Shown in pieces: positions 1 through 16,400 of a DNA stretch of 64,000 nt; the first letter of the stretch is position 1, and every line of letters begins with the position of its first letter. Source of the DNA: Orbicella franksi (lineage: Eukaryota). The stretch spans positions 18,538,001-18,602,000 of the forward strand of contig OZ116703.1 in assembly GCA_964199315.1 (NCBI GenBank), in the 5' to 3' direction. The position numbers and the translations under genes were made by a program. The notes below the pieces were generated by a model. The model saw only the letters and a list, made by a program, of their open reading frames with translations, did no database searches and was not told the origin of the DNA.

Positions 1-1100
1 TGCCACCAATACTGTTCCTAAGGAACTCGGAGAGGAATTTGCTAAACTCACCTCCCCTTTGGCCTTTGCTAAGGCTCTGCTTTATTATTTACAACCACTC
101 TCAATCAGCAGAGTAGCAAAAATATGCATTAGAACGTGATGGCCTATGGCCTATGGTTCATGATTTCTCTAACTCGGGTTTATCTAATCCCAGCTCCTTT
201 GTTCACCTCAGTAAGGAATTCCAAAAAGATCTGGATATGCATACTTCCTGGCTTCTTGGGGTGAGTTTCACCTGTTTTGACCCCTGTTTTCTTTCTGTTC
301 CAATTTTGTTTCCCTAGGCAGCGATGCCTCTAGGTTAATTGGTGAGGGAACATACCTCAATGACCACTGATTTAAAGGTGAATGGTTCCCTCAGCAATGA
401 TGTGCATCTTCCTCAGAAGTAAGCATTGCCTTGCAGGAACTTTTCCCTCTACTTAGCTTGTGCCATATGAGAAACTTTGTGGCACGATAGGCATGTGCAT
501 TTAGTTGAAGAGTTCAGCTGCAACCTTGACTTTGCCCTTGGGTTATCCAGACGAAACTGTCAGCTCATTGCTTTTTTGTTCTCGAAAGCATTCTTAAACT
601 TTTGCCCTTAACCATTCACTCGACCTTCAGACAGTGATGCTTTGGGCGGCTTTTGCTCTAGCCTTCTTTAGCTTCTTTTTGGGTGGTACGGTGGCCTTAT
701 GGTTGGTGGGCTGGACCCTAGATCGAGCGGTCCAGGTTCAAGCCCTGGTAGGAGACATTGTGTTGTGTTCTTGGACAACACACTTTACTCTTCCAGTGCC
801 TCTCTCTCCATGTAGGACCTGTGCTGGGTACCTGTGGACTAGCATTCCATCTAGCAACAACCCTTCGATCAGGCACTAAAATGATGCCTGGTTTGCCTTA
901 GCTTGGGTGAGAGATGGTGGCCACACCCACTTTTCCAAGGTATCATTCCTCGAGGAGCTTAGCATAGGTACACGCCATTCTTCCTGAGTGCCTCATGACA
1001 CCCATCTCATGGTTTTATTACGACTCGCTGACATTAGCCCCAAGTACAGGATGCACGCGCAGCAGGAAACTTCCAGGTCCAGGACAATCCCCTGCCTTCT
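1..1100 (-). mobile_element. Decayed retroelement gag-like remnant (possibly DIRS/tyrosine-recombinase type), interrupted by a SINE
   Basis: Minus-strand translation gives fragments ILVPDRR...W, KKKLKKARAKAAQ and a partial zinc knuckle CLSCHKVSH (Cx2Cx4H, ~490-530) among many stops and frameshifts. Family assignment is tentative. Confidence 0.3.
682..831 (+). mobile_element. tRNA-derived SINE fragment
   Basis: A-box-like TGGCCTTATGG (692-702) and B-box-like GGTTCAAGCCC (735-745), followed by a body (ttggacaacacactttactct...gtgcctctctctcca) typical of invertebrate SINE2 elements. Confidence 0.65.
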
Positions 1101-1610
1101 CCCACTTAAGGTTATTCCCCAGTATTGCATTGCGCATCCCTTCTGCGCATAATTTCACGCGTGATTAGCGCGCGCGCATTACAAAATGGCGGCTTTTTCT
1201 TTACAGCTGGACCTCGCCATAGAGGTAAATCGTCATTTTCTCGCAAACGAGTATGGTGATCTATCATTTTTTCTGTTGTTTTGAATTGAGTAATAAATTT
1301 CTCTGTGTAAAATAAATATGGACCAATTCTCAGTGTAGAACAAAAAGCAATCGTCGGAAACGTAAATTTAGCAAGCAATCGTAACTACAATCATGGTGCT
1401 ATTATAAGGATTTATATGGGTATATACAAGGTGCTTTTGCTCCTAAACGAACATGGGAACCCCTCATTTTTATTTCAAAATTTAAGTTCCTATAATGTAA
1501 ACAATCGATAGACAAAGTTTCACAAAAATCTCAGTGCAGGTTCTATTTCAGCGGAATGACCTTAAACTGTCTTTTTGTTGTGCGTGACATTAAGTTGGTA
1601 TTCTCAAGAC

Positions 1611-2045
1611 CTGAGGGGTACTCCTTTATTCAGGCTATACGGGAACGTGCCGCTGGGCAGGGTATGATTTTTTGGCCCCGTTGTCCTGAACAGGGTATAC
1701 AATTTTACTCGCCTCTGTCCTAAACAGGGTCAAGACCTGTCTTTAACAGGGAATGGTGTTACGAGCAGGGAGACTTTAACCGGCCATTACAAGGTCATCA
1801 GTCAACATCAGATCATTTTCTAACCAAGGATGCCATTGTTGTCGGTAGATTTTTTTTCCAGTTATCAGTATTATAGCAAGCGCGCATTGACAGAATAGAT
1901 CGTAACAGTAGGTCTAGTTTCTGTGTGTTTCTTTGTCCTACACAGGGTAGGGTTTTTAGAGTATTTTTGTCCTAAACAGGGTCAGGATTTCAAACCCTCA
2001 GCCGCGCCCCTATACCCAAACATGGGTCAAGTACCCCCCCCCCCG
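1611..2045. mobile_element. Non-autonomous DNA transposon (MITE), Mutator/MULE-like by TSD length
   Basis: Termini ..GGGGTACT / AGTACCCCCC..G. Exact 9-bp flanking duplication TCTCAAGAC at 1602-1610 and 2046-2054. Internal repeated (c)taaacagggt motifs. Related copies at 43.6 and 53.3 kb. Confidence 0.7.
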
Positions 2046-2166
2046 TCTCAAGACAACATTTTTGAAAATATGGTCTTGAATGGGAGCATTTGCTATTGAC
2101 TGCTGTATTTAATTACGCAAAATATGACAATAAGTTTCTAAGCACATTATTTTACAATTGCCGCAG

Positions 2167-5100
2167 GAAATAACCGACGAGTCGATAGCTCAAATGGTTT
2201 GTCACAGGATCCGTCTTCCCAAACAGAGAACGTTCACGATGAAAAAGTTATAAATCCACGTGCAATTGATACATTGAAGCATCCTGATCCTTTAGGAGTT
2301 CCTGGTAATAAACAAGGCAGTGAAAATGCTCGTAAACATCGTCGGAGCAACAGCCGTTCCTCTGGGGCTTGTGGTCCCGTCAGCAACCCCACCGGCAAAA
2401 GTAAAGATCCAGAACGTAGAAAGACTTCTGGTAAAGTGTTGGCAATAACTGCAGAAACGTTACTGGCTAACTGCCAAAAGGAACTTCAAGAAAAGATGAC
2501 AGCCGTAACAGAGCAACATACTAAAAAGATCGATGGAGTAAGTGGTCTTCTAGGTCGGCTGCGTGTATTGAAACACATTCGTTTGGAAGATTATGAACGA
2601 ATATGCTCAGAGAGAGAAGCTCTAAAGCAAAAGAAAGATGAGCTACAGCTACAGAAGGATGAATTTCAACGCTTTAAAGCTCAGATAACTTCTTGTCTGC
2701 TTGACCAAAGCTCTCAGCCGTTGTCACGTGTAAAGGGTACAATCAAGGAATTGAGGACTGCTGTTGGTAGAGAATGCCACAGGCTTGAAGCAGCCCTTCC
2801 AATGTACGCACGAAAAACCACCATAACTGACACTGTCAAGCAAAACCAGGTTTGTGTTGTTCTCGGAGAAACTGGATCAGGCAAAAGCACTCAGATGACC
2901 CAGTATCTCTACGAAGCTGGGTTTGCTAAGAACGGCCTAATCGTTTGCACTCAACCACGAAAAGTTGCAGCCACTAGTTTAGCAGCCCACGTTGCTGAGG
3001 AAATGAGTGGGGTTGTCGGACAGGTTGTTGGTTGCCATGTAGGAGGGAACATCCAAGCAAGCAAGACAACTGGTATTATCTACGCAACAGATCACATTCT
3101 CCTCAATGAATGCCTGAGAGATCCTAATCTATCCAAATATTCTTGCATAATTATCGATGAGGCACATGAACGCAGTCTTTACTCAGACCTACTTCTTGGA
3201 ATGATCAAGAAAAGCCTTGTACAACGTCCCGAGCTGCGAGTGGTCATCACTTCAGCTACCATTGATCCTGCTATCTTTGTGGCGTATTTTGATAAGTGTC
3301 CCGTTTTGAAGGTGTCTGGTAGAATATTCCCTGTGGATGTCATATGGAAAGATGGTCCAACAAGCAATGCAGAAAACTATCTGCAAGAGGCTGTTAATGC
3401 AGCTCAGGAAATTCACCGCAGGGAAGGTCCAGGAGACATTCTGGTGTTTCTTACTTCCCCGGTGGAAACAGAACGTGCGTGTGAAAAGTTAGGAAAGATT
3501 GAGCCTGATCCAAATCTGGTTTGTCTCCCGCTTCATGGAAAGCTACGTCAAGAAGAGCAGAGGAGGGTGTTCAAGGAAGGCGTAGGCAAACGAAAAGTAA
3601 TATTTGCAACGAATTGTGCGGAGACGTCCATTACAATTCCTGGGATAAGGTTCGTGGTGGACACTGGCATGGTAAAAGAAATGACGTTTGACCCAAAACG
3701 CAACAAAAGTTCTTTGGAAGTAACAACCATTCACAAGAGTTCTGCTGAGCAACGCAAAGGACGAGCGGGAAGGACACAGGCTGGAAAGTGCTATCGACTT
3801 TACAGTGAGGACGAATATGCAGCAATGGAAGATCGGTCCAGACCAGAGATTTTACGAGTCCATCTGGGCCAGGCAATGTTGAAATTAATGGAACTGGGCA
3901 TCGAAAATGTGACAGAGTTTGAGTTTGTGGAATCACCACCACTGGAATCAATAAAACTTGCCTTAGAGGACTTGGAATTGCTTGGAGCCACCGCTAATGG
4001 ACAGCTTACAGAGCTTGGCCACAAGATTGCTCGAGTTCCATTGGAGCCGCGCATAGCAAAGCTCTTATTTGATGGCATTTATCAAGGAATCGGTGCTGAA
4101 GCTTTGGCGTTAGCAGCCATTGCAACTGTAAGTGGTAGCGTATTTTTCCGCATGGGTAGCGAAGAGGAAAAGCATGTGGCTGACAGTAGGAAAGTCGGTT
4201 TCTGTCACAATGGTGGTGACCTGTTGACGTTGCTGGAAGTGTACAGACAACACCTGAAGCAACCTAAAGGAAAGCGAAACAAGTGGGCCTTTGACAACAG
4301 CTTGAACGCAAAATCGCTTCGCTTGGCAGATGAGACAATCAAAGAGCTCAAGCTGGCTTTGAATCACGAGCTGAACATTAGAGTAACAGATGCTATTCAA
4401 CAGAATGAGAGTACTGACCTGAAGCTGCAAAAGATTTTGGTATCATGTTATGCCGCCAATCTTTGTGTGTTCACTGGCCACCAGAAGGCAGGGTACAGAG
4501 TGGTGGCATTCAATCACTGTGCGCAGTTGCATCCTTCTTCAGCACTCAAGTTCCTTGGAGAAACACCTCAGTTTATCGTTTTTGAACAACTCCTTAAGAC
4601 ATCTCGAGACTTTGTCATCAACGCAACCCCTGTGGAAGAGACGTGGCTTCACGAAATGATGTCAGCAGGAGCTGTTAAGTGTGATTTCGAACAACTGATG
4701 TCAACAGTGCTGACAGAGGTTGCTTTGCCCTGTAGTCGAGACCTGATGACTTCAGCGTTTGGAGGATTCCGAAGACGAATGATTGATGCAGTTGAAGAGA
4801 AAGTGTCGAAATGTTGTGATGGTAGTTTGGTTGTGCTAGAGAAGAACGAAGAATCAGGCCAAGTGAAAATCTTTGTGCCACCAATCCACGTAGTCAAGGC
4901 TCTCTCTGTTGTGGGACAACACTTAGAGGAAAACAGGAAATTGCTGAGGGGCGAGCGAAAAGAAGAGTATCTAAAAGAAGATTGTCAGAGCAGCAGAATT
5001 GTTTGGGGACAAGGTGGGGAAGTGCAGGAATTGCTAATGCCTCATATGTATCTAACCGTGACAGTCGGTGAGATACAAGACGGTAACGCCTTGGTCGTCT

Positions 5101-7124
5101 TAGATTACTTGAAGTCGTTTGGAGAGATTGTGAAACACAATTTCAAGGAGCAGAGATGCAAGATGCGATTGTTTGCCACTTTCAAACATTCTGAAGACGC
5201 GGCCATGGCAGTTAAAAGCTCCTCCAGTAACCCACTGGGCATGGACGAAAAAGTGAAGCCGTCCCAGGCAATGTCTGATAACACACATTCACAAGTCCCT
5301 CAGTTTAAAGTGAAAGCCAAGTGGCTCCGACGTCCTGGTAAAGGTACAGGTTCCATTGAATTTTTCAACGCTGATGATTTTGCGTTTACACTTAGCAGTC
5401 TTTCCTTCCAGTCGCTAATGATAACATCGAATCGGGTTACATTTCAAGCGGACAAGCTTCGCGAAGGGCAGCTATTCATGAGAGGACTCCATCCCGAAAC
5501 TTCAATGGAGGATGTGAAGTCTGCTATCGAAAGAAGATTACCTAGTGTGAAAGTGAAAAACGTGTTTATCCATCGATTAGCAGAATTTCCTACTAGCGAT
5601 GAAACCCTTGATTCACAGACGTTATCCTTTCAAGAACGTCTCTACACCTTTGCTACAGAAGGCCAATTTTCCGTTCATTTGAAAAGACCTTCACCTAAAG
5701 ATTTTGATGGGCATGCCTATCTGACGTTCCAAGACGCTGAGGAGGCTCAAGCAGTCGTGAGAGGTCTTAGTGGCCAACGTATCTTTGACATCGGGATCGT
5801 AACCCTGGAACCCATCCTTTCAACTTTCTTGTTGTGTTCAAGAAATGTCTTCACTGTCATCGAAGATGAGCTGCGCGCAGTTGTGAAGGAACTAGATATG
5901 ACCTTTGACAAGAGGTTAGTTTTGAAAGTAAACTGTCAACGCAAAGACCAGCGAGTCTCCATCGAAATCCAAAGTGACTGTACGGAGCACTTTATTCGTG
6001 CAACAACAGCATTCAATGAGATCCTCAACGGAGACCGGATTGACTGCAAAACTTCGAAAACCTTGGAAATATTAATGACCAATCAGGTGAAAGACGTCTT
6101 GCAAGCCATCGAGAAAGATACTGGAACTGTAATCAATCAAGATTGGAAGAACAAAGTTGTCCGAATACATGGAAACGAGGCCAGTCGAGAATCAGCCAAG
6201 TGCGCTATCAACAAGTTTCTTGATGACTCCATCGCAAGTAACAGTCACCCATGGGAGATTCAGCTTCGGGGACCAGGCAAGCCACGCGGGCTGCTGAAAA
6301 CTCTTTTTAAGAGATTTGGCGTAGATCTCAAAGGACTGCAGGATATTCCTGGTGTCCAAAAGATCCATGTTGAATTCCGCAACCACGTACTTAAGATTCA
6401 GAGTTCCGATGAAGCTCGGGAAACAATCAATTCCTATGTGGAAGAGTGTTCCGAAAATCTTCCCAAGGAATCATCCCTTTTACCATCCGAAGGTCAAACC
6501 CAGCTGACTTGTGGCATCTGCCTGTGTGATGTGGACGACACAACTGATTTGTATAGACTTGCCTGCTGTGGCCATAGCTACGACAAGAGCTGTGTTATCC
6601 AGCAACTGAAATCTGCAGAGTTTCCACTTAAGTGTGCCACAGAGGATTGTGAAGAGCTCCTTGTGTGGAAAGATTTGCAGAATCTGTTGAGCGAAAAGGA
6701 GAGAAGAAAGCTCGCTATCAGTGCGTTGGACGAGTACGTCAAAAAGAATCGCGAAATTGTCAAGTATTGTCCAACTGCCGACTGCGGTATGGTGTACCGC
6801 GTCTCGACGGAAGGAAGACGCTTCACTTGTTGCGCATGCCTAGCCGAAATCTGCACGTCTTGCCACGTGCAGTGGCACAACGGGCTCACTTGTACCATGT
6901 TCAAATCAGGAGAGCAGGTAGAGGGATGTTTAGAAGACTGGATGATGAAGGACCCAAGCAATAGGAAGATTTGTCCCAAATGTAAGACGCCAATTGAAAA
7001 GATTGATGGCTGTAATCATATGACATGCTCTGGGTGTAAATCGCACATGTGTTGGCTGTGCCTGGAGGTGTTCCCAACAGGAGACCAGGTTTATGATCAT
7101 CAACGACACTGTCCGAAGCGTTAA
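2167..7124 (+). CDS. ATP-dependent DEAH-box RNA helicase fused to RRM/KH-like domains and an RBR (RING1-IBR-Rcat) E3 ubiquitin ligase; DEAH11/DEAH12-like. Large terminal coding exon; start codon probably in an upstream exon
   Basis: Uninterrupted 1641-codon ORF. Helicase motifs GETGSGKST, TQPRKVAA, IIIDEAH, SAT, TNCAETSITIPG, QRKGRAGR, followed by HA2/OB-like region. RNP-like HAYLTFQD. C-terminal CGIC..CGHSYDKSC..CATEDC (RING1), CPTADC..CCAC..CTSCHVQWH (IBR), CPKC..IEKIDGCNHMTC..CWLC (Rcat). The ORF-track start is TTG; splice acceptor ttacaattgccgcAG ends at 2166 and the frame is open from 2142. ATTAAA at 7309-7314. Confidence 0.93.
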
Positions 7125-8424
7125 GAGTGTGAACCGATTTCTTCTCTGCAACTTAAGAGTGTGTCCTCTTTTGTGACGTTTACGACCGACGATACATTGT
7201 GTTCTAGCTATACATTGTAAGCTTGTTGCCACTGGTAACATCCTAGCAGTCTGTTATTATTAGATTTGTGTAACGTTTTCCTAGATGTCCTCTGCCTTTA
7301 TTTCAAGCATTAAAACTTGCTAAATAGAGAGCGCTTAACGTGTTTCGGCACAAGAGGATACTGAGGAATGAAATCGTAAAATTCTATGCTTATCTAGATC
7401 CGCCATCCAGACCATATGGTGACAGTGTACTGTTTATACTTGATGTTTTAGCTTCAAAAAGAAGATATATCAAACGCGCAAGACAGTCTTTTACATTTCA
7501 AAGACCTCGAAGGATTCCGAATACTCCGCTGCGCATCGAAAATGTAACTTTCTTCTTGTTTTGGAATAGCCTGCTGAGACTGCGTCAGTCTAGACCGCCG
7601 GTATTATATAGACCCCCGGGTATCGACCATATCGAGGATTTTGTGGCACGTTCGGCTGCACCGCTGGTTAGGTTCGGGAAAGTGGTAAAACTAAGTTTAA
7701 CCTTACAGCTGATAGTCGTGACCAATACGATTCAAAAAATGGGGTATGTCTTTATCTCCATTCCTAAGAACAAGAATTTGTTTCCAAAACTTCCACACCT
7801 TACACGAGTAAAATTATTCGAAGGCAAGAGGTGACGCATCATGACGACCTAGTTTTACAAGGGCAAATATTAAAGAGCGGAGTTATTATTTGATTATCTC
7901 AAGGGTGTTCCAAGCACCCATGGTGCCTCCCACAATCTGAGAAAGAAATAACTTATATGGCCTCTGAAGTGCTTTTATAGCCGTAAGACCCTCAAGAGTG
8001 CAAAATGGGACATCACCTTCAGTTAGTCAGTACTTTGTCAATTTATTTGAATATCTGGCAGCACAATTTTTAGGAAGATTTGCTTTTCGAAATGATGAAA
8101 TTGGACCTCCACTTATATCTGACATCAAAGACCATTTCTGTAGCCTTTTGGAACTTTTTTGTGGATATATTGAACTGTTTCTGGTAACGGTGTAACTTTT
8201 CAGGTTTGATGTGATTTATGTGATAGTCTGTAACTTGTGATCAGCTGTTCTTTTTTCACACGGAGGCAGAAGAGAGAGAGGAAGTGGAAGGGGCACATTC
8301 GTTTGACAAGTCGTCTGCTTTCCCCAAATTTAAGTCTGTCATCTGACATGTCATATATGTCGTAATACGTTTGAGCCAGTCAGAATTTACCAGAGATCAT
8401 GTTTGTTTCTGGTTACATTTCCTG

Positions 8425-9943: not shown

Positions 9944-12900
9944 TTATTTTCCTCTGATCCAAGCTTCTTTTAGTACTGTGGCACTTTTTGGTGCTTTATA
10001 CCTGGGTTGAAAAGATCTTTTAGTTGCTGCAGGTAGTGATGGAAAGTCCCTCTCAGATATATCATTAGTTTTTGCCTCCATGTTCCAAGCTGTGGCCCCA
10101 CTTTGCCACACCGCAGGTGTAGCCATCTTTTTATGAGATTTTCCAGCTTTACTTTTGTGCTCTCCTTGTTGCTTTGCAGTAATTTTGGCATCTTGATGAG
10201 CAATTAACAGTTCTTTTTTTCTTTCTGGGTCAGGCAATAAATCAACAAGTTCTGAAAAAAGTTGTGAGAAATTTGACCCAAAGAGTTCACAACAGTGGGA
10301 ATAATATTCTGTAGCAGTACAAGCATTTTGTCGAAATGTCCCAGACAATGCCTTAAACTCATCAAATTTAGACTTATCATGTCCTAGTAAACCTCTTATT
10401 TTATCAACTAGCGCTTGATTTCTCTCTTGAACACTGTTCATTTTCACCTTGGGTTTAGGTGCTGGCACCTCCTGTAAGGGTGCCACATTTTCCTTAACCT
10501 TTTCTTTTGCCACCAAGGGTGTCTGAAAACCTGGAGGTGGCTTAGCACGATAAGTCTGCTGTGAACCAGCTAATGATGGTTGACAAGCTGCTGCAGCAAA
10601 CCCAGGAGGTATAGCTGATGATTGCTCTGGTACTTGTGCAGAGGCAGCCAAAGTGGGAAATTCATCAGCAGAGTGCAACTGTGCAGCACTGGCAGCTTTA
10701 CCATATATACTAGGCTTACTGGGTTTCTTGCTATCCTTGGCCACCTCACCCACACTTTTAACCTCCAGAGAACCAAGTAAGGCAGGAAATTGTCCAAGTT
10801 CCTCTGTGCTTTTAGCAACTGGCTCTCCAGTAGTTTTGCTTTCCTCAGGTTTGTATTTTTTGGGGTCTTGTGGTTTAGCCGATGGTGAAGGCAGCTGAGA
10901 AGGGTCTTGTGATGATCCACTTAATGAACGAGCCATTGCAGTTTGCAGATCTAGAGCTTCTTTCCTACAAATAAGACAACCGTTTGATAGTGAAAACAAT
11001 ACTGTACAAAGCTTGCAAAGTGACTTGTAATCACAGTGTTTGGCTGAAAAGCTACAGTACAAGTAGAACTTTTTCATCTAAGAGAGAGCCAAGGGAAGTA
11101 GCACTTTTCACATGCAATCTTGAAACACATTTAGTAGTGGCCAAGCAATTAACAGCCTACAGCCACTGGTGAAAAAACTATAAATCAATTTAAACAGGAA
11201 AGGTAAACCAGCAAAAGAAAGACTCGATAGGTTTTTAATCTGTTTGCCAAAATTGGAGAGTCTGCTCTGTTGTCATTCTCACAGTAATAATTATTATCAT
11301 TTGATGCATTTTTTTCTTCCTTTTCATTGGCCAAGAGCCAACCATGAGACATTCAAATTACTGCCTACAAAATAATGGTCTGTTCATGTGTAATTGTAAC
11401 CTTGCTCTCAGCTGAAAAGTGGCAGATCACCTCCCCTGAGCTGTCAGAGAGTGATTTAAATATGAAACAAACTTGGTGATCGAATGATAAAATAATAATA
11501 ATTATTGAACTTGGTTATTGCAAAATGTAATGATTTGTCACTGACAAATCAAAATACTTTGCTCAAACTTGATCAATGATTGTTAATTGTGAGAATTATT
11601 ATCACATATATAATTATTATTGTGAGTAACCTGTTAGCTATATCCTTTCTATTCCCTCCTTTTTCTCTCTTTCCCTTCCGTTGGTCTGAGGCTCTCACTT
11701 CCACGAAATCCCTGCCTGTAACAACTGAACCTTGATTTGCCTGCGGCCTAGGACGAGGTGCAAATGTGATGTCAATATCTAGTTGCCTAGCTTGGCGAGC
11801 CTGGGCTTTAGTTAAGTTTCCTGAGTGCTTTGCTGCACGATGGGCTTGAAGATCAACCTTCGTGCGAAAGACAGAGGTGAACTGCTCATGGACACAGTCA
11901 TCTTCCTCACAAAGGAAGTGAAAATCACGGAAGTGGACCCTGAGATATTCATAATTAGGATAGTAATCTTGACTGCCATCCCGCTCACAGAAGTGACACC
12001 AAAAATGATCCTTGCGCAAGTGCTTGTGTAGTTCATCATTGTCTAGATAACGGTGGTCACAAAATTCACACAAAGGATGCCCCTTGTGCGATTTGTCATC
12101 TGCATCACCAATTCTGCGGTGTCGTGCCAGTTCTGGACGAGTGTACACTTTCAACTCACAGCTGAATTTCTGTAAATGGGCAACACAAAGATCACAAAAG
12201 AACTTTTCATGTTCTCTCTTCATGTGGTCACGAAGACGATCAAAGCATCTGTCTGGTGGGCGATCTGGGCAGAGCTGGCAACGATACTCCAGGAGTTCTT
12301 TTACCCTCATTTGGATCTCTTTCCGCTGGTAAAAAATATGCTGCCTCTTATCAACCACAAAGGAACTCTTTCTGGCAGCAAGTTTAACATAGGTGGTGTT
12401 ATCTTTGGCCATAAATACCTGCATATAAGGACACAGAACATTGAAAAACACTGATCAAAAAATGTAACAGTATTTACTCTTTGGAATTTATCTTTTGCAT
12501 GGTCACATACATGTGTACATATGTAAATTTTCCAAAAATAGCCTTGTTTTAAGAGAGTATCCTTCCACTTCAATTTGGCTGTTGGTTTTCGTCACACTAA
12601 GCTGTAAAGTTCTAAAAATAGGTTTTCTCTGCCTGTTCACGCTTCTGGAAACAATGAATGAAATTGTTTTGGAAGCTTAACTTTGCTAATTATGTGGCCG
12701 TCAATCATTCAAGAAGCAAAGTGGTTAAGAAGTATTTAGTAGGCTTTGTCTACATAATCACAAGGCTAACAGATGAACGAAACTACGTCACAGATCAAAA
12801 TGCCGCTACAAGCAAATTTTACTTTCGTTTTAATCACTAACCAGTAGCGAGTTAATTTTCATAAGATAACCAACCACTCCTACTCAAAAATGTCGTAAGG

Positions 12901-13423: not shown

Positions 13424-16400
13424 ATGGTGCCTTTATGGAGGAGTGTGTCATCAGTTTCGAGGAGTTTAACCTGTAGAACCTTACCCGTGGTAAGTAAATA
13501 TCTTTTTTCCTTGTCTTGTCCTATTTTGTTTTAGAATTTAGGCCGAGAATAACTTTGACTCTCTCGGTTCCAATTCCCCTCTGTGATATTATTGCTTTAG
13601 TTCCATGCCAAAAATGGTCTTGATTTATTTGCAAAGTTCGAATTTCTGTTTAATTATGGCAGAAGAGGTTGTATGCGTATGCAGCTTCACCTCTAAGTGA
13701 GCCATTAGTGGATTTACAAGCTGAAACTGCGGAGGGAGTTGATCTATCTCCACAAAGTGTTCAGGTTTGTGAAACTAGGCACGATATATAATGCTTATTA
13801 TGAGCTTTGAGATGTAAGAGTTAGTACGATTGAAACCTCTTGCAAGGGTCTTGTATTGGGGAGAGCAAAGGTTCTTTTGTGAATTAAGAAGCAAGAAAAC
13901 AAAAATTAGGAAAGTGTCCATTATAAGGCTCTTCTCATGGGATTTCAGTCATCATTATCATTATAGTTGTTTTCTTATTTGTAAAGAGGTTGACAGTTTG
14001 ATGAATCCTTTAAATCAAGCATTTTCTGTGCATGTACATGTAAATTTCAGTCATGTATACTGGTTACAAAACCTTTGCTTGTTATTAAAGTAAAACACTT
14101 TTACAGGTTACTACATTAGAAAACGGTCTCAAGGTTGCCTCACTAGAGACTCATTCTCCTAAGAGTAGAGTGGGGTTATTTATCGATGCTGCCAGTCGTC
14201 ATGAAACACCAAACACACTGGGTATTAGCCATGTCTTGCGAAATGCTGCGTTTATGGTATGTGTCAAGTGTACTGTCTTCACCTACAGTAAATTTGTAAA
14301 GGAGTGCAATTAATTTTGCTACATGTGTAGATCTGCATTTCTCGAGAGTAAATGAGATGGTGTTGAAGATGGGCTAGCTGCAGGAGCCAAGTCACTTTTA
14401 TGCATGTTGATACTGCTTTGAGCTTAAAGTAGTTTTTTATACACTATAACTCTTAAGTTTGCTAAAATTAAACAGGTGAATATGTTTGTTGATACTTGCT
14501 CTCTTTCTTTCTTTCTTGGTATCTTTAGGGTAACTTGGACCATACAGGATTCAGAATTTCAAGAGAGCTAGAACATACTGGTGCAAGTTTAGAGTATGTG
14601 TGTTTAATTGTTTCTTGTTGACTATCTTACATCAAGTAGTCATCTGGGTACAGTTGGTTATTTTGCATGTCTGGCATTCACAAAAGTCTTACATGTTCAT
14701 ATTTAATCAAATTCAGTTTAGCGAGGGTACAGTACTATGAATGTTTCTTATTCTCATCCATATATTTACAGGGCAGCTTGCAACAGGGAGCATCTCATTT
14801 ATTCATCAGAGTGTCTTCGTAATGGCTTGTGAGTTTTGCATAGTAACAATGTATACTGTTAGATTACAATTAGTCCCACTTTCAGATAGTGAACTTAAAG
14901 GGTGAGTGAAGAGAAATGAGGATCAGTTGAAACTAACTGAAGAAGAAGAGGGAAAGAGGTTCTTTCTATGTTCCAGTTCTGAATGCCATCCATTTCTTCC
15001 CACTCTCCTTTTGGTACATTTTGCTTGTGTATGAAGTTGTTTCCTTGAAGTTATGGTTAGGTTAAGCACACACTTTCTTGAAGGGGTACATTAATTTTCA
15101 TGAAATGTTAATATTTTCACATTTTTTTCAGTAATAATTAACATAATCCAAAGTCAATTAATTATGTAAGCCATAATTCTAATATTATTCCTTTTGAGGT
15201 ATTACTATTGAGAATTTCGTAGTGGATCAATATATCAATATTACCCTAGTTGATTATTTTGCTCTATTCTTATCCTTTTTGTTGTCTTTATCTTTTTTTC
15301 AGAGCACTGGTGATTGACAACCTTGCTAATGTTGTAAACAAACCAGCCTTCCTGAGCTGGGAGGTGAGATTGTTGCAAAAATATTGTAACCAAACTTAGC
15401 CTCGTGTAGGGGAGGTTCTGTGACCTAATGGTTATTGTAACCACTGCCTTTCCAGGTGGAATGGGGTACAAGGGAACTGAAGATTCACTCAATCTGTGTT
15501 CATATGCATGCTGGTCTGTGTAGTAACTAGGGTCTGAAAAAGTTGTTGGCCTTTTTCAGTACTTCAGTTCAATTTTTTCACAAGGCACCTCGTTTAAAAT
15601 GATTGCATAAGGTAAATTTTGGTCGCTAAAATTAAAGTGCTTTCAATGTGAAACACATTAATTATGGGTATGTCACGGGTTAAAAAACATAATTATAATT
15701 ATTAATGAAATTGGTTCAAGGTACTCTTCTATGCAGTTGTTGTCATGCTTGTATTCAATATATTTTTTGTCAAATTGGCAGCCTATTTGAAAAAATTAAT
15801 TTAGTTTCAAAATTTTCTAACCCACTATAGTGACCAAAATGGTTGCACATTTGATCCCTGTTTCTTCCTCCTTTACCTGCCTTTCCATGTAAAAAATTTA
15901 CCTCCTTGAACTATTGCCTGTTCAATGATACTGGAATTCAAAACTATCATTTCAATATTTGAAATGTTTTACAGTTGTACTGTGTGTATCACAAATTCAC
16001 TTTGATTAATACTACTGTACATGCATAATATTAATTATAACATATCACAGATGTTTAGGAAATCAGGTTGGGTTGCCTTTTTTATATAATTAAGCAATTT
16101 TTTTATATATTATGTTTTCCTTTTCATTGTACCATAAGCTGAATGTAGAAAATTATTGTATTCATTATAATTACATGTATCTTTCAGCTTGAGGGTGCAA
16201 TGAATCGTGTGAAGTTAGATCTTGCAGTGAAAGACTCCCAACCACAAATAAGTATGTGCATCATTATCTGTTGTCAGTTACAGTAAATGGATTGTATAAT
16301 AATCCTGCACATTTGTTGTGTTTGAGAAATCTTGTCCTTTTTCCTCCTTTCCTGCTTGCAGTTTATGAAAATATTGTTGTTTTTCATTTCATTTTGTGTA

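Follow-up and report, generated by a model that had tools for sequence, protein, structure and literature searches.

A 64,000-nucleotide stretch of the genome of the coral Orbicella franksi (assembly GCA_964199315.1, contig OZ116703.1, positions 18,538,001 to 18,602,000, forward strand), referred to here as the window, carries near its start a large exon of a gene that combines a DEAH-type RNA helicase, a predicted RNA-binding array, and a RING1-IBR-Rcat (RBR) ubiquitin ligase module in one chain. Positions are given in window coordinates, with negative numbers upstream of the window, and all parts of this gene lie on the + strand. An open frame extends from 2142 to a TAA stop codon at 7122 to 7124, and an AG acceptor at 2165 to 2166 places the first exon base at 2167. 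The resulting terminal mega-exon (2167 to 7124; 4,958 nt including the TAA) encodes residues 1 to 1651 in the numbering of the translation of 2169 to 7121, which was used for the Pfam run and is followed throughout. RNA contigs of two runs (X1 and X2) tiled the mega-exon with 0 to 2 mismatches, and one contig of run X2 carried a GT..AG joint from -32 to 2167 (L019, 368 to 2567). Since RNA contigs cover the exon and carry this joint, the gene is transcribed and spliced; the mega-exon was detected in 11 RNA runs, from many studies. The original prediction for this locus, made from the letters of the DNA, had claimed a single ~5 kb exon with one intact polypeptide, and the open frame, the acceptor, and the RNA joint uphold that claim. 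We consider it quite probable that the locus is an intact, expressed scleractinian gene of the DEAH11/DEAH12-like type, a member of the ancient "Helicase/Plant I" RBR subfamily, that the mega-exon is its large terminal exon, and that its product acts as an RNA-coupled RBR ligase.

The intron that precedes the mega-exon begins at -31, outside the window, and its 3' part occupies window positions 1 to 2166, as defined by the same RNA joint. Upstream of it, a tblastn search with the repeats of Orbicella faveolata recovered four exons flanked by AG and GT (-6304 to -5996, -5819 to -5511, -5337 to -5029, and -340 to -32), each exactly 309 bp long and of compatible phase, with an in-frame ATG 16 nt 5' of the first. 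A fifth copy of the 309-bp unit, His/Arg/Ser-rich like the others and probably disordered, opens the mega-exon itself (2167 to 2453). All five repeats align with one another, and the intron sequence 5' of the fifth was duplicated together with the 309-bp unit. The full gene model of 2,069 amino acids (~230 kDa) fits the O. faveolata protein "DEAH12, chloroplastic-like isoform X2" (P0002; 2,046 amino acids), which begins with five ~103-residue repeats; in the O. franksi model, the N-terminal 510 residues that hold the five repeats have an isoelectric point (pI) of 9.75. The original prediction spoke of an intronless 5 kb exon; of the gene, only the helicase-to-RBR part is intronless, given the four upstream exons and the spliced joint. 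Over the whole repeat-exon array (-6320 to -32 and 2167 to 2453), intron ends were co-duplicated with the exons, and each has an in-frame ATGGATTCATTTACAG; several units could therefore be alternative first exons.

Downstream of the repeats, an AlphaFold2 (AF2) model of residues 96 to 840 (predicted local distance difference test score [pLDDT], 87.6) showed a helical stalk followed by RecA1, RecA2, winged-helix, ratchet, and OB-fold domains. The stalk (2457 to 2792) consists of three long helices of 34, 40, and 24 residues (H2-35, H44-83, and H90-113; pLDDT 80 to 93) ahead of RecA1. Where a coiled coil had been proposed, the helices are thus present in the model as a helical stalk, the pairing into a coiled coil being the wording of the original prediction. 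The RecA1 and RecA2 core (2784 to 3848; Pfam DEAD, residues 221 to 366, and Helicase_C, residues 411 to 536) contains superfamily 2 (SF2) motifs I, Ia, II, III, V, and VI in canonical form: GETGSGKS (2865 to 2888), TQPRK, DEAH (3156 to 3167), SAT (3252 to 3260), TNCAETSIT, and QRKGRAGR (3750 to 3773). These motifs were invariant across 41 family members. The winged-helix, ratchet (HA2), and OB-fold domains (3849 to 4688) were delimited by Pfam (HA2_N, residues 598 to 625, below its own cutoff; OB_NTP_bind, residues 753 to 831, 1.4e-9), by alignment to DHX8, and by Foldseek. A PDB sequence search matched residues 208 to 833 to the DHX8 helicase cassette (E = 3.8e-135), and Foldseek of the helicase model retrieved DHX8 (E = 7e-56) and ADP-BeF3-bound Prp43 (template modeling [TM] score, 0.76). 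Judged by its motifs, the protein is predicted to contain a catalytically complete DEAH/RHA helicase.

A second AF2 model, covering residues 841 to 1651 (pLDDT 85.8; predicted TM score [pTM], 0.72), contained an alpha/beta domain, three RRM-like domains, three KH-like domains, and the RBR. The alpha/beta and RRM-like domains occupy 4689 to 5813 (Pfam Nup35_RRM_2, residues 972 to 1015; RRM_DEAH11, weak, residues 1054 to 1134; RRM_1, residues 1165 to 1205). The KH-like domains follow at 5817 to 6458 (AF2 secondary-structure elements 377 to 590) and include the family-specific KH_DEAH11 (residues 1362 to 1431, 2.3e-20) and KH_DEAH11_2nd (residues 1295 to 1344, 8e-5). The predicted RNA-binding array of seven domains thus sits between the helicase and ligase centers, both of which are intact and conserved. 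On the ligase side, RING1 (6510 to 6650; Pfam zf-RING_2, residues 1447 to 1483), the predicted docking domain for ubiquitin-charged E2 (E2~Ub), has seven positions—C1448, C1451, C1467, H1469, C1475, C1489, and C1494—that were invariant in 48 sequences. The IBR (6723 to 6893; Pfam IBR, residues 1519 to 1575, 7.5e-16), a C6HC domain between the two RING-like domains, likewise had invariant Cys/His columns. The Rcat (RING2) domain (6972 to 7112; Pfam IBR_1, residues 1598 to 1638, 1.2e-9, and IBR_2) has the sequence CPKCKTPIEKIDGCNHMTC, and its predicted catalytic Cys1615 (codon 7011 to 7013), within GCNHMTC, was kept in 47 of the 48 family sequences. Foldseek of the RBR part against the PDB returned HHARI, ARIH2, RNF216, HOIL-1, HOIP, and Parkin. 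Pfam, the PDB sequence search, and the models therefore agree with the original prediction on a full DEAH ATPase, RRM/KH-like modules, and a complete RING1-IBR-Rcat with its catalytic Cys (GCNHM).

The same prediction had matched this architecture to plant DEAH11 and DEAH12, and structural comparison agreed: against Swiss-Prot models, Foldseek of the C-terminal 811 residues retrieved Arabidopsis DEAH11 (3e-51) and DEAH12 (9e-50) over residues 8 to 806, with the next-best match near 1e-9. Sequence search scores of the C-terminal half gave indirect support for its placement with this subfamily rather than with Ariadne: DEAH12-annotated proteins were found at E <= 1e-66 and the Ariadne protein ARI7 only at 1e-9. 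With the C-terminal half alone as the query, 379 representative clusters were found at E <= 1e-30 among 1.84 billion proteins. Named members came from Nematostella, Lingula, Tegillarca, Saccostrea, Ostrea, Elysia, Haliotis, Pecten, Ylistrum, Parasteatoda, and Gossypium, and most bear the NCBI label "DEAH12, chloroplastic-like." A protein atlas comparison yielded only RBR and KH-RBR clusters, mostly fungal and with lead-level scores. The Helicase RBR subfamily has been described as ancient, with multiple independent losses in animals (Marín, PMC2904391). The coral gene is an ortholog of already annotated genes in a published subfamily and, to that extent, a largely ordinary find.

By analogy with characterized DEAH helicases and RBR ligases, the likeliest mechanism would be that of an RNA-coupled RBR ligase. 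The helicase and the RRM/KH array would load the protein onto single-stranded RNA in a ribonucleoprotein (RNP), and ATP would drive its 3'-to-5' translocation along the RNA. RING1 would recruit an E2~Ub of the UbcH7 or UbcH5 type, ubiquitin would move to Cys1615 as a thioester, and it would then be handed on, either to the ligase itself or to a protein that sits on the bound RNA or close to it. Autoinhibition is probable, as in other RBRs, and RNA or the nucleotide state would be the likely release signal. Coupling of this kind is seen in ZNFX1, a different pairing of helicase and E3, whose NTPase and E3 activities are both enhanced when RNA is bound (bioRxiv 10.1101/2025.09.05.674436).

Several points weigh against this interpretation or against parts of the gene model under it. 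We infer the ATPase activity, RNA binding, E2 choice, thioester formation, and substrates from the enzymology of DEAH and RBR proteins. We found no functional or mechanistic study of any animal member in the literature, as the original prediction had supposed in stating that no animal function was characterized, and the study of cotton GbDEAH12 reports a developmental phenotype (fiber development) and nothing on a ligase mechanism (PMC13407882). In RING1, the fifth zinc-ligand position is Asp1472 (6582 to 6584) in all corals sampled; this position was Cys in 38 and His in 4 of the 48 sequences, with Cys kept in Nematostella, molluscs, and plants. Asp can bind zinc, and Asp1472 is a plausible ligand; with it counted as the fifth, RING1 would have the eight zinc ligands of a cross-brace. 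As to the gene model, one RNA contig, itself an assembly, supplied the only splice joint observed; repeat exons one to three and the start codon were placed by homology to an Orbicella protein that was itself predicted automatically; and two raw-read RNA runs (X22 and X24) had very low depth over the locus.

Full-length relatives in this genome were confined to one cluster, on contig C6. An intact tandem paralog, copy B, lies 20 kb upstream of the window gene (copy A) as a 1,643-codon mega-exon (C6:18519555-18524483; window -18445 to -13517). It is 74% identical to copy A in the C-terminal half and has DDAH in place of DEAH and GCYHMTC as its Rcat motif. Exons 5' of its mega-exon (L017:7898-8764 and L017:9417-9887) encode a DZIP3-type HEPN domain (E = 4.9e-56) and a weak TRADD-like_N domain. 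The tree placed the split between copies A and B within robust corals, and copy B grouped with a protein (P0016) whose gene shares a contig with two A-type genes in another species. Two decayed copies (about -50075 to -48357 and -41137 to -40105) have one common internal deletion, which removes the helicase and the RRM/KH array so that the stalk is followed at once by the last KH domain and the RBR; frameshifts are present in both copies as well. An alternative acceptor or isoform at 2451, proposed from loose read ends (L019, 2851), was rejected because these ends have the sequence of the truncated paralog ~49.7 kb upstream, and we attribute them to cross-mapped reads. As the match is exact, this decayed copy at -49.7 kb is still transcribed. 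The rapid family turnover that the original prediction had hinted at is real in kind and modest in extent, with one intact tandem paralog and two decayed copies.

Selection was estimated as the ratio of nonsynonymous to synonymous divergence (dN/dS) by pairwise Nei-Gojobori comparison of four coding DNAs, with the window gene set against two coral genes (one of them syntenic) and against copy B. Values were 0.25 and 0.32 for the two coral genes and 0.35 for copy A versus copy B. By segment, dN/dS was 0.15 in the helicase core, 0.17 to 0.24 in the winged-helix, ratchet, and OB domains, 0.39 to 0.50 in the RRM region, and 0.18 to 0.29 in the RBR, which makes the RRM region (4689 to 5813) the fastest-evolving segment. 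The gene is under purifying selection overall, relaxed in the RNA-binding array. Synonymous divergence between copies A and B was 0.16 in the helicase core (2784 to 3848) and 0.43 to 0.53 in the RRM/KH region (4689 to 6458). These values hint at gene conversion between the two copies, restricted to the helicase.

Downstream in the window, a convergent ZNF598-like gene occupies 9944 to 12451 on the - strand (PAH_ZNF598, 2.2e-28; zf-C2H2_13, 4.4e-8). ZNF598 is the E3 ligase that acts at collided ribosomes. Another coral (L020) has the two genes side by side as well, and a shared neighborhood does not by itself argue for a functional link. An exon of a UQCRC2-like gene (Peptidase_M16), the neighbor named in the original prediction, lies at 14014 to 14298 on the + strand and is 83% identical to its counterpart at the syntenic coral locus (L020), where ZNF598-like and UQCRC2-like genes are likewise found downstream. 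Of the remaining features, a candidate polyadenylation signal, ATTAAA, lies at 7309 to 7314, 185 nt past the stop codon, and was recognized by its sequence only. Within the last intron, a dispersed repeat of ~460 bp (about 1105 to 1566, + strand) had at least 1,622 first-look candidate copies in the genome; the 40 that were scored were 95 to 97% identical, and the repeat is young. An Rfam search of this repeat gave no match. The high copy number of the repeat accounts for an RNA depth that runs into the thousands in this part of the intron, and a hidden exon or RNA gene at ~1000 to 1600 was ruled out on the same grounds (at least 1,600 dispersed copies and nothing in Rfam).

What an RNA-coupled ligase of this kind would do in a coral cell is a separate question, for which we weighed two roles. 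The first, to which we would give somewhat less than an even chance, is a constitutive RNP-remodeling or quality-control ligase. Its substrates would be proteins on messenger RNPs, ribosomes, or spliceosome-like complexes that are stalled or aberrant, and the RS-like repeats would direct the ligase to RNA granules or nuclear speckles. The nearest helicases are the spliceosomal DHX8/Prp22, Prp2, Prp16, and Prp43, the N-terminal repeats are rich in Arg, Ser, and His with the basic pI given above, the helicase core is strongly constrained (dN/dS, 0.15), the gene is conserved from plants to animals, and its transcript appears in many unrelated RNA runs. The convergent ZNF598-like neighbor, an adjacency kept in another coral, points weakly in the same direction. 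On the other hand, the repeated losses in animals (PMC2904391) imply a dispensable family, which is unusual for core RNP machinery; the overall dN/dS of 0.25 to 0.35 is high for housekeeping helicases; and the paralog copy B has apparently acquired HEPN and TRADD-N modules. The original prediction held that a single-copy gene under strong purifying selection with constitutive expression would speak for a housekeeping role. The overall purifying selection (dN/dS, 0.25 to 0.35) and the detection of RNA in runs of many studies lean somewhat toward a constitutive role.

The second is an antiviral or innate-immune sensor-effector in which the helicase and the RRM/KH array would recognize foreign RNA and the RBR would then ubiquitinate viral or signaling proteins. 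An immune role is plausible, though we regard this specific proposal as rather unlikely. It draws on the exons for a DZIP3-type HEPN RNase and a weak TRADD-like_N directly 5' of the copy B mega-exon, on an Oculina paralog with TRADD-like_N (8.9e-7), and on the report that TRADD-N occurs in cnidarians and brachiopods fused to immune modules that target RNA (Kaur et al. 2021, PMC8195603). Tandem duplication and decay of copies specific to the lineage, the RNA-binding array that evolves 2 to 3 times faster than the helicase core, and the precedent of ZNFX1 as a helicase with E3 activity against viral RNA also favor it. Yet the window copy has no immune adaptor domain, and its N terminus is a probably disordered basic repeat; the N termini of 10 distant animal members are likewise without immune domains, with RRMs only, in two of them. 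Pairwise dN/dS was well under 1 in every segment, synteny with orthologs is preserved, the transcript was found in RNA runs of many studies, and the family also occurs in plants, where the reported phenotype is developmental. A broader and equally tentative idea is that the DEAH-RBR proteins of invertebrates may be ubiquitin ligases gated by ATP and RNA, convergent with ZNFX1, which would sense foreign or aberrant RNA and act against it cell-autonomously, and that robust corals may be swapping N-terminal modules between tandem copies. If this were true, the swapped output or targeting modules would be the His/Arg/Ser-rich repeat exons of the window copy versus the HEPN RNase and TRADD-N of copy B.

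The gene belongs to an old family. A maximum-likelihood tree recovered a cnidarian clade, made up of Nematostella and Scleractinia with robust and complex corals apart, and a lophotrochozoan clade; it agrees with the species phylogeny and places the window gene among the annotated animal orthologs, which indicates vertical inheritance. One exon encodes the entire protein in Lingula (coding sequence [CDS], 5,229 nt) and in Ostrea (7,884 nt), and three exons do so in cotton. Because single-exon CDSs also occur in Lingula and Ostrea, the mega-exon is a long-standing feature of the animal genes, and its layout therefore does not point to recent retroposition or horizontal transfer. Origin as a recent retrogene or by horizontal acquisition, to which the original prediction had been led by the intronless helicase-to-RBR part beside a multiexonic UQCRC2-like gene, is very improbable and was rejected in view of the four upstream exons and spliced intron, the single-exon CDSs of Lingula and Ostrea, a tree that recovers Cnidaria, Scleractinia (robust versus complex), and Lophotrochozoa, the synteny kept between corals, a GC content close to that of the flanks, and the age of the subfamily (PMC2904391). 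The coral genes were not seen nested among those of plants or protists, nor was the gene missing from sister cnidarians.

The helicase-RBR proteins form one of only three RBR subfamilies common to plants and animals and are missing from the standard animal models. An ATP-driven RNA motor coupled to a thioester-forming ligase would be a clean system in which to study how RNA state is turned into protein ubiquitination. To this the coral locus adds that both catalytic centers are conserved and that the gene is transcribed; it also adds tandem copies whose main difference lies in the modules at the N terminus, one of these modules being of immune type.

Among known systems, the spliceosomal DEAH helicases DHX8/Prp22, Prp2, Prp16, and Prp43 resemble one half of the coral protein: the helicase cassette is 38% identical, with all domains and motifs present, whereas the C-terminal RNA-binding array and the ligase are absent from them. 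The other half is closest, among solved structures, to HHARI/ARIH1, ARIH2, RNF216, and HOIL-1 (E = 1.5e-7 to 4e-6), with which the Cys-thioester mechanism would be shared. Ariadne-type RBRs differ in having no helicase or RRM/KH array, and their autoinhibitory Ariadne domain is absent from the coral protein. In ZNFX1, too, a single chain unites an RNA helicase with a transthiolating E3, but the two proteins are not homologous, ZNFX1 having a Upf1-like superfamily 1 (SF1) helicase and an RZ finger and the coral protein a DEAH/RHA SF2 helicase and an RBR, so the likeness is an analogy only. Both halves occur together in Arabidopsis DEAH11 (P0CE10) and DEAH12 (F4KGU4) and in cotton GbDEAH12, which have the same collinear order of DEAH helicase, OB, RRM array, KH array, and RING1-IBR-Rcat. 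The catalytic Cys and the helicase motifs of plant DEAH11/12 are kept in the coral protein, and identity in the C-terminal half is 24 to 28%. Relative to the plant proteins, the coral protein adds the N-terminal His/Arg/Ser-rich repeat exons and the Asp at RING1 ligand 5, and the three-exon CDS of cotton differs from the mega-exon of the animal members. The "chloroplastic" in the name of DEAH12 is meaningless for an animal protein. From the animal proteins annotated as "ATP-dependent RNA helicase DEAH12, chloroplastic-like" in Orbicella faveolata, Acropora spp., Nematostella, Lingula, Haliotis, and Pecten, the O. franksi protein shows no difference in kind, and the O. faveolata ortholog, 89% identical over the C-terminal half and with the same five N-terminal repeats, spans the whole model.

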